From contig CDRNVI010000021.1 of NCBI GenBank assembly GCA_977017575.1, forward strand, positions 718,440-782,439: 64,000 nt of DNA. The letters are read 5' to 3'. Both the position numbers and the translations under genes were made by a program. Shown piece by piece: positions 29,331 to 36,744 of this stretch. This stretch comes from Paramoeba atlantica (lineage: Eukaryota > Protista > Discosea). Positions within the stretch are counted from its first letter, which is position 1. Each line of letters starts with the position of its first letter. The notes below the pieces were generated by a model. That model did not search any database. It was given only the letters and a program-made list of their open reading frames with translations, and was not told where the DNA came from.

Positions 29331-30560
29331 AATTGAAACAATTTCATTTTCAAGAGAGGGACTCGTAATAAACGTATAAACGTTCTTTTAACCCTTCTTT
29401 TTCAATGAAACAAGGACCCATATGGGTCCCGATGATTCATCCGTTTCCAAGTATGTAAATATGTGTAAACCCACACGGTTCCTTGAAGTGAACTTGTCAC
29501 ATTCATTGAATGGACATACTTTCACAGGAAATCGTCGTGTGTTAATGGTTTTACATAATACATTTTCCATAAAGTAGAGAATCTCTACTGATTTTAGTGG
29601 ATGATCTAGCCTTGTGAATGCTTCTTTGGTGCGCTTTTCTGGTGGATACAAAGTGAGGGGTATAACCCCCACTTCGCCTTTTTCCAGTGAAGCTTCGAGC
29701 CACTTCAAGAGTGATAAAAGTTTATCACGTTCTGTCAGTTTCGGCCAATTACGGTCTTGCGTGATAGTGTAGGCTATCGCTCCCAGGGAGAGCTCATCTT
29801 CATCGTTTCCTACTAAAGGAACTGGCGTAGTAGCCATGTTTCCAATATTGTAGACTGTTCGAATTGCCGCTATCTGTGTTTCCATAGAAGCTGCGCAATT
29901 GTATGTGAACACTCGTCGTTTAGTCAGACATACCATTGCGAGGCAATCGCCATTGCCTTTAACGTAAACGACGTTATGTCCATCATGATGCCTCTGAATA
30001 GAGCATCTTTTATCTCCATCGCTTTGGAGGGTTTCATCACAAACAATGTGTGAATTGATGAGAATATTCTCAATCAGTTGAAAAGATGTGAGTGTTAGCG
30101 TGGAGCATTGCTTCACACGTTCCAGCTCATCATCCTGCGATACTGCATGAGCTCTGTTGCCTATCCTATCCTATCCTATAAGACCGATTTGCATCGGTTA
30201 AGAACACATCCGTTTTTGTCGTCGCTTCGACGTCTTTCTCTCAGGTGAATTCGCCCTTTCATGCTCGTTGTCCGCTGAACCGGGCGTGGTACGTCTTTCA
30301 TGCAACTTTGTATTTTTGGCATCACATTCCTCAGGCAAACACTCTTTCTTTTCAGGAGAATCCACTCCAGTCTCTACAGGTGGCGAGGTACCCTTTTTGG
30401 AGAGAGGATCACCTTCTGCAATCTTGAAGTAATCCCGTCTTTTCCCTAATGGCTTAGGTATTTGGCCACAGTGTTTCCGAGGACGATTCATGGTTTGAAC
30501 GGTTTCTTAGCTAACCCTTTGAGCTTCTGAGGCACTTGTCGCAGTCTTTCTCCTCTTTAT

Positions 30561-33500
30561 TTATTTCTTCCTCTTTATTTCTGAGGCTGGGACTATTTTT
30601 CTCGACCCTGCAAGCGCCAAGGTGTCTGCCTTCTCATTGTAAATGTTCCCGTTGTGGGATTTCACTTTGCACACGTAACACCTTTTATCCATCGATTGGA
30701 GCGTTCGAATTTCCCGATCCAATTTCTCAAGGATACCCCCATTCGGTAGATTGTTATACCCAATGATTCGCCGTCGTAGACGAGTATGATGGAAGAAATT
30801 CCATACATAGAACGAATCGGTGTGTATGACAACTGTTTGAGCCTCATTAGGTATCCTTTCCAGCGCTTCCCTCAGCGATTCAACCTCAGCTCTCTCAGCT
30901 GAGCCAGCATCCAATGCTATGGAATAGTATTTGTCTTCTGTTCCACTCATTCTCAGAACTATTCCCGCACCGGATCTTTGTTCCTTGGACCCCCGCAACT
31001 GCCGAACAGAGCCATCAATATACATATGAACCTCACCCTCACTCATGTGGAACGGATCCGAGCCTTCCTCCACAAATTGTAGCTCATAAGAGCTTTTGCT
31101 TTTGACCGCTTGAGTGTGTTTAGTTTTCCACCTTGGAGACCTTAATACCTCATACATCGGAAGTGGTTCAAGTTCCTGCCTGAGCTCATCGCATAGCTTT
31201 TGCCAGTGTATCCGATCCTGCGAGTAAACAAGCGCCTGCTCCAGAGTGACCCCTAGATCATTAAAACTTGCTTCGCTAGGAGAAATATTTCTTGTTTTTT
31301 CCGTGCTATTCCATTGAACGAGCTCGCGAAACGTAGAGGAGTGCCTGAGCATGTGGCCAACGATTTTCGCACGGGCAACACGATGCACGGTCGAAAATCG
31401 AGGCGTACCACAATACAAGGACTCTAATGGGTAGCAGTGTCCGAAATCGTCAAGCTTTGCTGAGTTACAAGCGAATCTCCTCATCATATTTACCTCAACC
31501 TCCGTTTTTCGAAGCATTTTGTTAGAAAGAGAAAGACAGGCTGCACCAAACGTTAAAATAGGGTAGATCAAGCAGTCAAACAGGCGTATTTTCGTGGCAG
31601 CACTCAGAGGAGAAGCCCAAATGCCACTGAGTTTACGAAATGCTGCCCATGTGAGCCTTAGCCTGTCCTTGATGGGGGATGATGCTGTAGCATCTTGGAG
31701 ATGACCAAGATGCCGGTAGGAATCCACAAGAGGAATCTTGCCAAGCGATCCTGCTCGAAGTTCTCGCGTCCCCCCCGGAACTTTCCCAAAGGCCATCCAC
31801 GCAGTCTTGGTTTTCCCCACGGCAATCCTCAGATTAGCTGGTTTTGCCTCATTTGCCGTAGCTTCGATCATTTGCGATATTTCATGTTTCGTGGAAGCTA
31901 AAAGTGCTATGTCGTCTGCGTAGTCGATGTCCTTTAGTCTAAATTCTTGAATTCCCCTGCTTTTCGTCCAGCTGCTCCTTAGAAGAATCCCGAGCGGCTT
32001 GTTATCGAGTGCTTTGTTGAGAATCCTATCGATTACAAGCACAAAGAGATAAGGAGCAAGCACGTCCCCTTGAAGAATTCCTGTTTCAATGGGAAAAGAA
32101 TCCGTATTTCCGTATGGTGTGCGGACTATTCCTTTTAAATTCGAGTACAAGGACATTACCATCCTAGTAAGCGCGGGTCCGACATGAAAGGCATTCAATG
32201 CAGCACGGATGGCATGAAACGATACCGAGGGAAATGCTTTTGCGAAGTCCATGAATGCCACTGCAATGCCTTTCTTGCCCCTGGTCGCACGAACTCTTGC
32301 ATCATTCAAAATGATTTGCGCCCCTGCCGTGGACCTTTCTGGCCGAAAACCAAATTGACTGTCGCGAAGGAGCGGCTCGATGGATGGTCTGATTCTTTTC
32401 AGGATCATTGCATTCATCAATTTAACCGCACTTTTCACGAGACAGATTGGCCGCCAATTCGCTATTTGTGTCAGGTCGCCTTTTTTTGGAATAGGCACCT
32501 GAAGGACAATTTTCCAGGACGCAGGCGAAACCCCTGTTCGATGAACCTCGTTTATAATATGTAATAAGGATTTTCTCAGCTCAGCATGTTCTGTGATCAT
32601 TCTGAGTGCCTGCTCCGGAATTTGGTCTATTCCATGTGCCTTGTTGCGCGCTAGTCTACTGATGCCGCCCTCGAGCTCTTCTACAGTGAAACTTTCATCG
32701 TTGATTGGTACTTTCGGGCTGACTACTTTGTCAAATTTTATATCTTTATCTCCGCGATCATCGGACCCCATACGAGCAAAGAAATCTTTAACAATGTTAA
32801 GAGTTTCCCTTGTCGACGAGGTCTCGATGCAAAGAGTCTCCCTGTACAAACCGCAAATTCTACGTAGCGTACGCCACGGATTAGAACGGTTTCGCCGCAG
32901 ACCTGCTTCAATTTCGGCGCATTCCTGCCCAATCTGCGCCTCAATTTCTTCTCCGTGCTCTTTTAGCACTTCCTTGAAGTGGTCCGGTTTTCGACTCTGA
33001 AGAAATAAGTCGCGAAACCCTGAGATGCGCGGTGTTTCTGTACCCGGTGGTGTGTTTTCTGTCCCTGTAGGAGCGTTGGTCGTTTTTGGGGTTCGGTCCT
33101 TTTTTGAGAGTCTTTGCGCTGTGTGTACCATATTTTCCGATAAGTATTCCCATGTGATCTCTTCCTCTTTCTTCGCCATTTCCCACACTGCTTGCTGGAA
33201 GGATGCCTTCTTCTCTTCATCTCCAAGTCTTGGCCAGGGTACCTTGCTTTGCCCACCTGTACCTTTAGAGCGCCACTTGATTTTCACATCCGCCATAACG
33301 ACGCAGTGTACTGTAGGCACTGGCGCCTTGAGTACTTTGTGCCTCCTAATGCTGCAGGCAAAGCGCTCACTGACCATGATGTGGTCAAGCTGTCTCCGCA
33401 CCTTGTTGTCCCCACGCCTTTTGCTACCTCCCTTTTTGCCGACCTCCCCTTTTACGTGCATGTACTCGCAGGCCTTGTCCCCATTTTCCTCTCCTTCCCT

Positions 33501-34808
33501 TCCCCTCTTCACCATACCGTTGTTATCCGTCCCCTCTGGCTCTGATCCTTTCCTTCCCATTTCCACCTTTCCTTCTTCCCCCTTCTGCCCCACCTTCTCT
33601 GTTCCTACGTTGCGACGGTCCTTTGTCTCCGCCCTCCTGCCCGGCAGCTCACATGTCCATTTCCTCTTGCTCGGGCAGAGGGTGTGTGCTGACTTACAGC
33701 CAATGGAGCACAAGAGGCCTTTCAGCTGAGAGACCGCTGGGGGATCCATGCTCGGATTCGTCACGAGCGTTATCGGTGCATTGAAATCCCCCATGACCAA
33801 TAAAGGTCTTCGTTTCCTTTCAGCCTTGACCTCACGACACGCCTTGTCCAAGTCACCCAGAAATGCCGCATGAACGGCTTCTGAGGAGTCCCGTATTGGG
33901 GCATAGACATTGAACAAAGTGCCGGTCCCCTCCTCCAGGGGATACTCAGCTCCCATCACCCTGTTGCTCACCATCCAAACCTTCCGAAACGCATGCCGGC
34001 TCACTATGGCCATGCCATTATATGAATCGCGTGCGGCGGCCGACTGCAAATACAGGTGAAACCTCTCCCCTAGGTTTTCAACCTGCCTGTAGAGGATTCC
34101 ATCCTCATGTCCTTCCTTCGAGAAATTGTACCTGGTCTCCTGAAGGCACATGACAACAACCCCCCTTACCTGCATGAAAGCAAGCACCTCGTTCAAACGG
34201 GTGCATCTTCGAAGAGAGAATTCATCTTCCCCCTCGAGTTTTAACGTCGTAACGTTAAGCGTTGCAACGGTGGTGTTCTCCTTCACAGCGGAACCTTTGA
34301 GGTTCTCCGAATCTCGTTGGGCGTGTGTGCCACGCGACGCCCAGTGTGACCGAGGGCGGTGACGGGAGCTCCTTCGTTTCGCCTTTGCCGGGTTACTCAC
34401 CTGCACCGCGCAGAGCACGACACCTGTATTCGGTAAGGGGGGAAAGGGAAGAGTCTTGTGCGGCCTCGCCACGTACCGAACACGAAATGTACCGGCCAAA
34501 GGTTCACCTCGAGTTACCGAGGATCCCCCCTGAGTATGCCAGCCTACGCTTTTCAGATAAGCCGGCCCCTCACACACGACCTCGCCCTCCCAAACAAACA
34601 AAGTGTCGCAACAGTTGTCGTGTCTCCACGCGACGCGAAGATGAGCCCCAACGCGGACAAACTTACAGAGCGCCCGCACCGCTCTCTGGAGGAGTTTAGC
34701 AGGCCCCTCTCGCTCGGGTGAACGAAAGATGACCCCCCGACCACGCTTGGTCCGTGTAAGGGTTTCAAAAACCTCTGTCCCCTTACACGTGCCGGAAGCA
34801 TCCGCCAT
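30561..34808 (-). CDS. LINE polyprotein: APE endonuclease + reverse transcriptase + RNase H (RTE/Ingi-like architecture)
   Basis: Uninterrupted 1415-aa ORF. APE motifs: CLQETR, FNVYAP, MGDFNA, QLDHIMVS. RT motifs: IPKKGD..NWRPICL, QFGFRPERST, FMDFAKAFPSV, GILQGDVLAPYLF, YADD. RNase H motifs: YIDGS, ERAEVESL, HTDS, KVKSHNGNIYNEKADTLA. Confidence 0.95.
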   Translation of the reverse strand: MADASGTCKGTEVFETLTRTKRGRGVIFRSPEREGPAKLLQRAVRALCKFVRVGAHLRVAWRHDNCCDTLFVWEGEVVCEGPAYLKSVGWHTQGGSSVTRGEPLAGTFRVRYVARPHKTLPFPPLPNTGVVLCAVQVSNPAKAKRRSSRHRPRSHWASRGTHAQRDSENLKGSAVKENTTVATLNVTTLKLEGEDEFSLRRCTRLNEVLAFMQVRGVVVMCLQETRYNFSKEGHEDGILYRQVENLGERFHLYLQSAAARDSYNGMAIVSRHAFRKVWMVSNRVMGAEYPLEEGTGTLFNVYAPIRDSSEAVHAAFLGDLDKACREVKAERKRRPLLVMGDFNAPITLVTNPSMDPPAVSQLKGLLCSIGCKSAHTLCPSKRKWTCELPGRRAETKDRRNVGTEKVGQKGEEGKVEMGRKGSEPEGTDNNGMVKRGREGEENGDKACEYMHVKGEVGKKGGSKRRGDNKVRRQLDHIMVSERFACSIRRHKVLKAPVPTVHCVVMADVKIKWRSKGTGGQSKVPWPRLGDEEKKASFQQAVWEMAKKEEEITWEYLSENMVHTAQRLSKKDRTPKTTNAPTGTENTPPGTETPRISGFRDLFLQSRKPDHFKEVLKEHGEEIEAQIGQECAEIEAGLRRNRSNPWRTLRRICGLYRETLCIETSSTRETLNIVKDFFARMGSDDRGDKDIKFDKVVSPKVPINDESFTVEELEGGISRLARNKAHGIDQIPEQALRMITEHAELRKSLLHIINEVHRTGVSPASWKIVLQVPIPKKGDLTQIANWRPICLVKSAVKLMNAMILKRIRPSIEPLLRDSQFGFRPERSTAGAQIILNDARVRATRGKKGIAVAFMDFAKAFPSVSFHAIRAALNAFHVGPALTRMVMSLYSNLKGIVRTPYGNTDSFPIETGILQGDVLAPYLFVLVIDRILNKALDNKPLGILLRSSWTKSRGIQEFRLKDIDYADDIALLASTKHEISQMIEATANEAKPANLRIAVGKTKTAWMAFGKVPGGTRELRAGSLGKIPLVDSYRHLGHLQDATASSPIKDRLRLTWAAFRKLSGIWASPLSAATKIRLFDCLIYPILTFGAACLSLSNKMLRKTEVEVNMMRRFACNSAKLDDFGHCYPLESLYCGTPRFSTVHRVARAKIVGHMLRHSSTFRELVQWNSTEKTRNISPSEASFNDLGVTLEQALVYSQDRIHWQKLCDELRQELEPLPMYEVLRSPRWKTKHTQAVKSKSSYELQFVEEGSDPFHMSEGEVHMYIDGSVRQLRGSKEQRSGAGIVLRMSGTEDKYYSIALDAGSAERAEVESLREALERIPNEAQTVVIHTDSFYVWNFFHHTRLRRRIIGYNNLPNGGILEKLDREIRTLQSMDKRCYVCKVKSHNGNIYNEKADTLALAGSRKIVPASEIKRKK

Positions 34809-34823
34809 GTTTTTATAATTAGA

Positions 34824-35075
34824 TTACAAAAAACGATGGTCTTACAAAAAACGATGGTCTTACAAAAAACGATGGTCTTACAAAAAACGATGGTCTTACA
34901 AAAAACGATGGTCTTACAAAAAACGATGGTCTTACAAAAAACGATGGTCTTACAAAAAACGATGGTCTTACAAAAAACGATGGTCTTACAAAAAACGATG
35001 GTCTTACAAAAAACGATGGTCTTACAAAAAACGATGGTCTTACAAAAAACGATGGTCTTACAAAAAACGATGGTC
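34824..35075. repeat. 14 identical copies of an 18-mer (minus strand GACCATCGTTTTTTGTAA)
   Basis: TTACAAAAAACGATGGTC x14 = 252 bp, directly adjacent with no spacers. Confidence 0.95.
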
Positions 35076-35081
35076 TTAAAA

Positions 35082-35199
35082 GAGTACAACACTCAGGGTT
35101 CCCGAGCGATCGCTCACCTCAGTACTAACTGAGCCTGACGGTGCTTAACTTCACAAAGCGAACGGGATGTGGTGTTTTCACCGTAGTATGGTCGTACCC
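35082..35199 (-). rRNA. 5S rRNA: 5S rRNA, full length (retroposed copy), followed by TTTT; first 18 nt reiterated twice upstream (35200-35237)
   Basis: GGGTACGACCATACTACGGTGAAAACACCACATCCCGTTCGCTTTGTGAAGTTAAGCACCGTCAGGCTCAGTTAGTACTGAGGTGAGCGATCGCTCGGGAACCCTGAGTGTTGTACTC. Helix I pairs fully (GGGTACGAC with GTTGTACTC), and the conserved GAAGTTAAGC and TTAGTACT blocks are present. Confidence 0.93.
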
Positions 35200-36744
35200 T
35201 CGTAGTATGGTCGTACCCTCGTAGTATGGTCGTACCCGCTCTGTTGCGCTCAGCATGTGTGATCCGAAGTCGAAAAGCCCGAGCTTCAGCATGCCGCGGA
35301 TGGCGGTAAAAATGCTTTTGAAGCCCCTTAAACGTGAACATTTGTTCGGTAGCGCACAAAGTGCACTTGAACTTGTTCTGTTCGCAGGGGAGGGTAAATT
35401 CGATCCAGTCAACTTTTGTTTAAACATAACGTGTATGCTCACTTGATACCAAACGGTATTCATCTGCTGGGATAATACCCGTTGTTCCTTGAATCTGTGC
35501 GAAATACGTACATACTTCGCACAGAGAAACATTCATATCAGTTGGGAGCACCTGTGAAGGGTGCCCCCTACTGAGTATGTGTCCCATCATAGATTTGACA
35601 CTTAGTTTGCGTATGGCGTGCATACATACGATCCATTAGAGAAACTTACGTGAAGCTCCCATTTCGGATGTAGATACGCCATTTCCCGATGTTTCAGAGA
35701 ATTCGCGTGATTAGTATCCACCATGACTGGAGGGAAATCTTGCAAGATAGCAAAGTAATTGCAAGGAATACATAAATGCATTCCTTCGCAATGTTGTGCT
35801 ACATGCTTCGTTATAGCCTCTTTTTAAGAGGTGTTTCAGAACACCCAGGCAGTTTGCACTGGTATATGTTTTCCGTTTCAAGGACGTTTTCTGTCCAAAA
35901 TGCGTACCACCGCTTGTGCTCAGAGCACTTCGCAGGATTGTGCTTCTTGTGGGGCATACCCCCCGCATCAAAGAACGAACAAGCTTCACAGCTTTGTTCA
36001 CTTGTTTTCATATGCTTTTTTTTCGACGTGCTTTCTTGCAGCGCCGAGGCTCATCACTTCACCGGAACAAGCGTCCGCAACACACTTGTAACCGGATTCT
36101 GTGCCTGCGCTTGCGTGAGCTATGGGAAGCTCGTGCCATAGTTCGAACAGTTGCTGTTCGTGTTCGTGGCTGATACTCGAAATATGCTCTCGAGTTTTCA
36201 AGATAGGACGCTGTCCATGCATACTCGAAAACACTTTGTCGGAGCTGCGTGCGGAGTCATAGTTCTTGTTACCTACCCAGTTTCCAAAAATTTTACAATA
36301 GCCACCGCTCTCCCAGCATGACTTCATTCCGTTTTTCTACTTCTTTTCTATTTCTTGTCAATGTGGCAAAATCAACGCGAAAATGAGAATAGTCGCGAAA
36401 ATGAGAATGAGAATGAAAAAATTCTGTCAATGTTCAATTACGGATTCTGAGAACAGTGACTACCACTGTATATGTAAAAAACCTTTCGAATGTTTCGAAT
36501 TTTATTTCTTTTGTATACAGCCATTGATTAATTATCACTGTTGCGCTGGTAATGTGTGCTAGTAGTGTAGGCATGAGTGTCACCTAATAGTACCCATAGA
36601 TAGTTCACCTCAGTTCGTTCTTCCCAAGAATTAAGAATGAATTTAAAAAAAATTAGCATTCGAATGGTTTTTTTGCTACCTAACATAAGTAAATTATTGC
36701 ATCAAAAAATAGACAAAAAAGAAGATAAGATGGGCACGACAGAT

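Follow-up and report, generated by a model that had tools for sequence, protein, structure and literature searches.

A complete 5S rRNA and an intact LINE inserted together in one event, probably through a reverse transcriptase template jump

Template switching by the reverse transcriptases (RTs) of long interspersed nuclear elements (LINEs) has left its main natural record in fusions of a small RNA to a LINE. Nearly all described cases come from mammalian L1, with others from L2 and from the MGL element of Magnaporthe. In the mammalian U6/L1 and 5S/L1 chimeras, a small RNA polymerase III (Pol III) RNA lies 5′ of the LINE within one target-site duplication, an arrangement ascribed to RT template switching in the course of target-primed reverse transcription (Buzdin et al.; Garcia-Perez et al.; PMC4476161; bioRxiv 10.1101/2025.02.02.635956). 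The LINE part of these chimeras is usually strongly 5′-truncated, and their 5S segments are mostly truncated and antisense (PMC4476161; bioRxiv 10.1101/2025.02.02.635956). Platypus U6–L2 involves a stringent LINE, with foreign RNAs seen only as chimeras formed via template switching (PMC4476161), and in Magnaporthe grisea the WEIRD, Mg-SINE and MGL-LINE sequences form bi- and tripartite chimeras flanked by direct repeats (PMC2104539). Here we describe a fusion of a complete 5S ribosomal RNA (rRNA) to a complete LINE in a 64,000-nt window, by which we mean the whole stretch of DNA analysed (contig CDRNVI010000021.1, positions 718,440 to 782,439, of assembly GCA_977017575.1, deposited as Paramoeba atlantica). 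We put the probability at roughly 0.8 that this fusion arose in a single recent retrotransposition, during which the RT would have made a one-off jump from full-length LINE RNA onto mature 5S rRNA.

Among the closest described systems is mammalian U6/L1, in which, as here, a full-length, sense small RNA lies 5′ of the LINE inside one duplication. Unlike in the mammalian chimeras, both partners in the window are full-length, the open reading frame (ORF) is intact, the 5′ end is reiterated and the host is, on the evidence given below, a euglenozoan; unlike L1, the LINE encodes an RNase H domain and ends in a hairpin and an (ATAGG)n tail. The platypus system is similar in that a stringent, simple-repeat-tailed LINE acquires a small RNA only by template switching, but there U6 is mostly 5′-truncated and the L2 part is short, whereas here both are complete. 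With Magnaporthe the window's genome has two features in common: LINE and short interspersed nuclear element (SINE) templates have repeatedly captured a single abundant non-coding RNA, and multiple jumps are made per event. In Magnaporthe, however, the acceptor is an RNA of unknown function, the jumps fall at internal consensus sites and terminal reiteration is not described.

Two sets of observations carry the case for a joint arrival as RNA. First, the 5S and the LINE lie together inside a single 10-bp duplication (GCTCTGTTGC in window orientation, at 30151-30160 and 35238-35247), and the target is itself a repeat: a Helitron-like element present in multiple copies (15 or more paralogs). Three of these paralogs (on contigs C32, C41 and C43) are uninterrupted and align across the site with one GCTCTGTTGC and nothing between. 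Because these empty sites hold a single 10-mer, the 5,077 bp, 5S included, arrived in one event; insertion together with the duplication is far beyond chance. Rejoining the flanks restores the host frame (..ITHAERNRAHAVSQDDELERVKQCS..), and the LINE 3′ end, hairpin and (ATAGG)n, is present as in other copies. The original prediction, made from the sequence alone, had proposed such a single event, which the duplication, the restored frame and the empty paralog sites bear out, and every component that it listed (duplication, 5S, TTTT, 18-mers, leader, 1415-aa ORF, hairpin and tail) is in place on the minus strand. It had also placed the 5S +1 nucleotide at the very start of the unit. The first inserted base is indeed 5S G1, but two 19-nt units precede the full 5S (Table 1).

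Second, the 5S head matches an RNA rather than a gene. It is not truncated (35199-35081; Rfam RF00001, 99.2 bits, model positions 1-120) and is identical to the tandem-array 5S genes at 119/119 positions. Both the head and each reiterated unit begin exactly at G1. Upstream of the native genes is ...TTACGCC, and downstream come T5 and AAATGC, in that order; the chimeric 5S ends in T4 and runs straight into AAGACC of the first 18-mer, with the gene flank absent. The start at G1, the T4 in place of genomic T5 and AAATGC, the lack of gene flank and the identity to the gene together point to an RNA origin, and are the signature that a mature Pol III transcript copied as RNA would leave.

Table 1. 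Components of the chimeric insertion, in window positions. The element is on the minus strand, so its 5′ end has the highest coordinates.
Feature	Window positions	Strand	Basis
Chimeric insertion, total 5,077 bp	30161-35237	-	Flanked by perfect 10-bp target-site duplications
Upstream target-site duplication, GCAACAGAGC in element orientation	35238-35247	.	Sequence; single copy at the empty site of 3 paralogs
Two 19-nt reiterations, 5S positions 1-18 + A, GGGTACGACCATACTACGA	35200-35237	-	Tandem Repeats Finder (TRF), period 19, 2.9 copies, 100% matches
118-nt 5S rRNA, full-length, sense	35082-35199	-	Rfam RF00001; 100% identity to tandem 5S genes
U4 tract (TTTT), 3′ oligo-U of 5S RNA	35078-35081	-	Native gene: T5 then AAATGC
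14 perfect 18-mer copies, AAGACCATCGTTTTTTGT, normal 5′ array of the family	34826-35077	-	TRF; same array in other copies
17-nt leader preceding the start codon	34809-34825	-	Sequence; conserved in other copies
Intact ORF, 1415 aa	30561-34808	-	Open frame and Pfam domains
Apurinic/apyrimidinic endonuclease (APE) domain, approximate	33369-34214	-	Exo_endo_phos, residues 199-480
RT domain, approximate	31800-32492	-	RVT_1, residues 773-1003
RNase H domain, approximate	30606-31034	-	RNase_H, residues 1259-1401
3′ untranslated region (UTR), terminal hairpin then CTT	30180-30560	-	Fold
3′ hairpin: 6-bp stem, GCAA loop	30183-30198	-	Fold of last 100 nt
(ATAGG)n tail, ~4 units	30161-30179	-	TRF; tail of L101 the same with more units
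Downstream target-site duplication	30151-30160	.	Sequence; paralog empty sites

With its hairpin and simple-repeat tail, the LINE family is of the 'stringent' type. The order APE, RT, RNase H within one ORF (Pfam) places it in the RNase H-bearing APE group (I, Tad1, Ingi, LOA or R1 type). Its nearest relatives are metagenomic proteins with the same three domains and 42-46% identity over the RT region; neighbours in the Atlas are fungal and arthropod RVT_1+RNase_H clusters at scores of 0.85-0.89, a coarse lead only, and the PDB matches are confined to the R2 and L1 reverse transcriptases (E ~1e-15). No Pfam domain matches a 97-aa ORF inside the 3′ UTR. The stop-codon end of the main ORF (window 30547-30580) carries an 18-nt tandem duplication that is common only to the closest sister copy, the other copies being 18 nt shorter.

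The proposed route has five steps. The LINE protein would nick the target at ...GTTGC^GCTC on the window's plus strand, and priming on the (AUAGG)n tail would allow the whole 4.9-kb LINE RNA to be copied to its 5′ end inside the 18-mer array. At that point the RT would make an end-to-end jump to a mature 5S rRNA, landing on its 3′ oligo-U and copying the molecule to G1. Two jumps back to approximately position 18-19 of a 5S RNA would follow, each extending the product by a 19-nt unit in which a single base is non-templated or mismatched, before the complementary DNA was joined to the upstream target end.

The same genome holds further fusions that bear on this route. All other dispersed copies of the window-type 5S are also chimeras, at no fewer than four independent loci with SINE-type partners. 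At one (C51, L082), a 5S with U5 is followed by a 5′-truncated SINE within the duplication GCCAGTCAC, and the SINE part starts with two copies of its first 22 nt. At another (C48, L083), flanked by the duplication AAGGCGACC, two units of the 5S 5′ end (a partial one of 9 nt and a full one of 18 nt) come ahead of 5S-UU and a complete transfer RNA (tRNA)-derived SINE. The same SINE follows a 5S with 2-3 U at C86 (L092) and at the duplicated C8a/b (L093/L094), with different joint bases, and C39 (L085) reads 5S-U5-A8-5S-UU-A7 before other sequence. The U tails at these joints vary in length from 2 to 5, as expected of RNA 3′ ends. The differing joints of the C48, C86 and C8 copies make them look more like repeated accidents than like a small family. 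Reiterations of 18-22 nt, with 1-2 deviant bases per joint, occur at C48 and C51, and mark a jump-prone enzyme. The partner SINE has a terminal GCAA hairpin similar to that of the LINE and a different tail, which implies that at least two LINE partner systems capture 5S. No bare 5S retrocopy was found among the dispersed copies, the 5S appearing solely in fusions; this fits a stringent LINE that takes foreign RNA only via template switching, a line of reasoning already applied to platypus L2 (PMC4476161).

Several points weigh against a template jump as the explanation. Short-read contigs of four public runs bridge none of the junctions, because each of the sequences involved (5S, 18-mer and host element) is a repeat, and independent support from the reads is weak. 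The exact position of the joint U4|AAGACC is uncertain by up to 2-3 nt, since the sequence downstream of the native 5S also starts with AA. Among full-length copies of the family, the duplication has been established for the chimeric copy alone. Finally, template switching and ligation of the RNAs before reverse transcription would leave indistinguishable sequences, although the reiterated units argue for jumping.

To place the chimera within its family, we searched the window's own 45.7-Mb assembly with the 5′ 468 nt of the element. Nine or more other loci contain the leader and ORF start. The family comprises at least 10 5′-intact copies and at least 25 3′ ends, most of the latter 95-96% identical to the chimeric copy, which is the only one with a 5S head. 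Six other 5′-intact copies were read. Four of them (C12, C18, C40 and C1) begin directly in an 18-mer array of 14-19 units, with unrelated upstream flanks; in the other two (C50 and C6) the array comprises at least 97 units and extends past the locus examined, and both are covered by the junction search. None of the six loci contains a 5S or any other Rfam RNA. The closest sister copy (C30; the same locus as L101 in another assembly) is 99% identical; it lacks a 5S, and its 18-mer array amounts to less than one unit. The 20-nt junction between 5S and 18-mer, GTACTCTTTTAAGACCATCG, has a single match in the 45.7 Mb at up to 2 mismatches. It is absent from Joint Genome Institute (JGI) metagenome contigs, a metagenome scan for the leader gave no match, and no junction-spanning ORFs are on record in public assemblies.

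The alternative that survives best is ligation, in which a cellular RNA ligase of RtcB type links the 3′ end of the 5S to the LINE RNA's 5′ end, and a single pass of reverse transcription copies the product. The end product would be identical, a full-length sense small RNA joined to a LINE is the U6-type pattern, and ligation before reverse transcription has reportedly been demonstrated for U6/L1 (PMC6789731). The two extra 19-nt units would nevertheless still require template jumps, which makes jumping alone the more economical account. In addition, 5S RNA does not, to our knowledge, bear the 2′,3′-cyclic phosphate that makes U6 a ligase substrate, and we count this against ligation, which we regard as improbable.

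Still less probable is a 5′ transduction, whereby a source LINE just downstream of a 5S gene or pseudogene was retrotransposed from a read-through transcript initiated at the 5S start. Spacings of ~7.3 kb between some 5S genes on C74 suggest inserts and would be compatible with such a source. Against it, the assembly contains no second 5S/18-mer junction, and genome searches with the element's 5′ and 3′ ends found neither in the 5S arrays. A start at G1 implies Pol III, which would have had to read through T4 and fourteen T6 tracts, and the T-run is one T shorter than that of the gene.

An assembly artefact, with a chimeric read or a mis-join bringing the 5S beside the LINE, has very little to recommend it beyond the failure of public short-read contigs to bridge the joints. 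A mis-join would not fit a 5S so precisely into the space between a LINE 5′ end and a perfect 10-bp duplication, at a site that is empty in paralogs. The read data consist of Logan contigs from four runs of the same organism, each holding parts of the stretch. The contigs stop at every repeat boundary; those of the 5S continue into native gene flanks, and those of the right flank into the empty-site sequence of paralogs. In two runs (X1 and X2), some depth is seen across the reiterated 19-mers at 35205-35244. The other two (X3 and X4) show a very high summed contig depth on the 18-mer at ~35025-35078 and leave the host flank uncovered, with many short contigs ending in Illumina adapter right after 18-mer units; this depth may reflect abundant short 18-mer-containing molecules or a mere repeat artefact.

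Hardly any probability attaches to the idea that the copy is a member or founder of a LINE lineage in which a 5S gene regularly serves as 5′ module and promoter. Precedents for a 5S-headed retroposon exist: SINE3 (Kapitonov and Jurka 2003) is reportedly a propagating family whose 5S-derived head runs into the body without a terminator. The window's element resembles SINE3 in carrying a 5S at its 5′ end, and the copy is intact with its internal 5S promoter unmutated. Unlike in SINE3, however, the junction is unique and terminators follow the 5S: there is neither a set of copies at different sites sharing the 5S–body junction nor a terminator-free path from the head into the LINE body. Judging by its known termination signal, Pol III would stop directly after the head. 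Because T4 and fourteen T6 tracts come next, the 5S cannot be the Pol III promoter of the LINE; it appears to be a passenger rather than a promoter module and, at most, a new dispersed 5S gene copy ending at T4. The sole 5S head among the 5′-intact copies and 3′ ends, and the absence of the junction from the JGI contigs, also count against such a lineage, and the copy census refutes it for the present genome.

The original prediction had left two alternatives. Its first, a LINE family with a 5S 5′ module, finds no support, given the unique junction, the six other copies that lack a 5S and the terminators. The genome search that it had proposed for the junction returned only one copy, with four of the six others read starting at the 18-mers, which points to a one-off chimera. 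Its second, a template jump onto mature 5S, fits all the data and is reinforced by the other 5S chimeras in the genome.

We also rejected a LINE that targets 5S genes: the target is a Helitron-like ORF, the flanks of other copies are unrelated and the 5S lies inside the duplication. The Mutsu elements of the Tx1 group (Kojima and Fujiwara 2004) are said to insert into 5S genes, with the 5S outside the duplication; they differ from the present element on both counts, and what they have in common with it is the association of a LINE with 5S.

The native 5S genes form tandem units of ~2.55 kb on five contigs (C107, C97, C74, C11 and C3), with native-type units additionally on C41 and C24. On the opposite strand of each such unit examined (L070, L062 and L089, on C97, C107 and C11) is a spliced-leader gene, ...GATACAGTTTCTGTACCTTGTTG|GTATGAG, of kinetoplastid/diplonemid type. 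Linkage of spliced-leader and 5S genes in one unit is typical of euglenozoans, and this arrangement supports a euglenozoan host, in agreement with the guess of a euglenozoan-type genome that the original prediction had made. On C74, at 103-124 kb, the 5S spacing rises from ~2.6 kb to ~7.3 kb in some units, suggesting ~4.7-kb inserts of another LINE; the enlarged units have no match to any part of the present one. Contigs C137-C182 (loci L031-L060) carry a 5S rRNA of a second and very different type (GTCTTCGGTCATACC..., 102.8 bits) in many scattered copies (47 scored, 1,876 first-look candidates). A conserved A/G-rich block lies upstream of these copies and polypyrimidine tracts lie downstream, and this second type looks like that of another eukaryote co-assembled with the window's organism.

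The 18-mer array, at 14.2 copies with 100% matches (TRF), raises a more general possibility. It could be derived from a 5S 5′ end captured long ago: the 18-mer matches the start of the 5S at 9 of 10 bases, GTAxGACCAT (post hoc shuffle p ~0.001-0.01), a likeness that may be due to chance. On a broader and doubtful version of this idea, the RTs of this genome's hairpin-tailed LINEs would systematically re-copy the last 18-22 nt at template run-off, and such stutter, together with 5S as a preferred acceptor, would have built the array. If so, the intact chimera would be a snapshot of the renewal of a LINE 5′ module. Two findings speak against stepwise reiteration as what sets the array length: less than one unit is present in the closest sister copy, and the 18-mer also occurs in a composite satellite with a 207-bp spacer. 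The 18-mer may have originated as a LINE 5′ end, as a satellite or by reiteration.

The composite satellite lies at 586-598 kb of C30, where blocks of ~21-31 18-mer units alternate with the 207-bp spacer. The long arrays directly upstream of LINE copies are at 84.7-87.1 kb of C50 and on C6, the latter composed throughout of a variant unit (..TTTTTTAT). Two further tandem arrays, at 30-50 kb of C71 and 1-16 kb of C61, have periods of 3,420 and 3,740 bp, respectively, and each contains ~5 18-mers together with the leader and the initial 30 nt of the LINE ORF.

The locus reveals no new kind of element and no 5S-driven LINE. It is an unusually clean and young case of a small-RNA/LINE chimera, with both partners complete, no mutations and a known empty site, and it extends this record to a different kind of LINE and to a free-living or parasitic euglenozoan host. 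In the present genome, 5S has been captured repeatedly, much as U6 has been in mammals, and the 18-22-nt reiterations at three independent 5′ joints provide a distinctive footprint of how the enzyme behaves at template ends.

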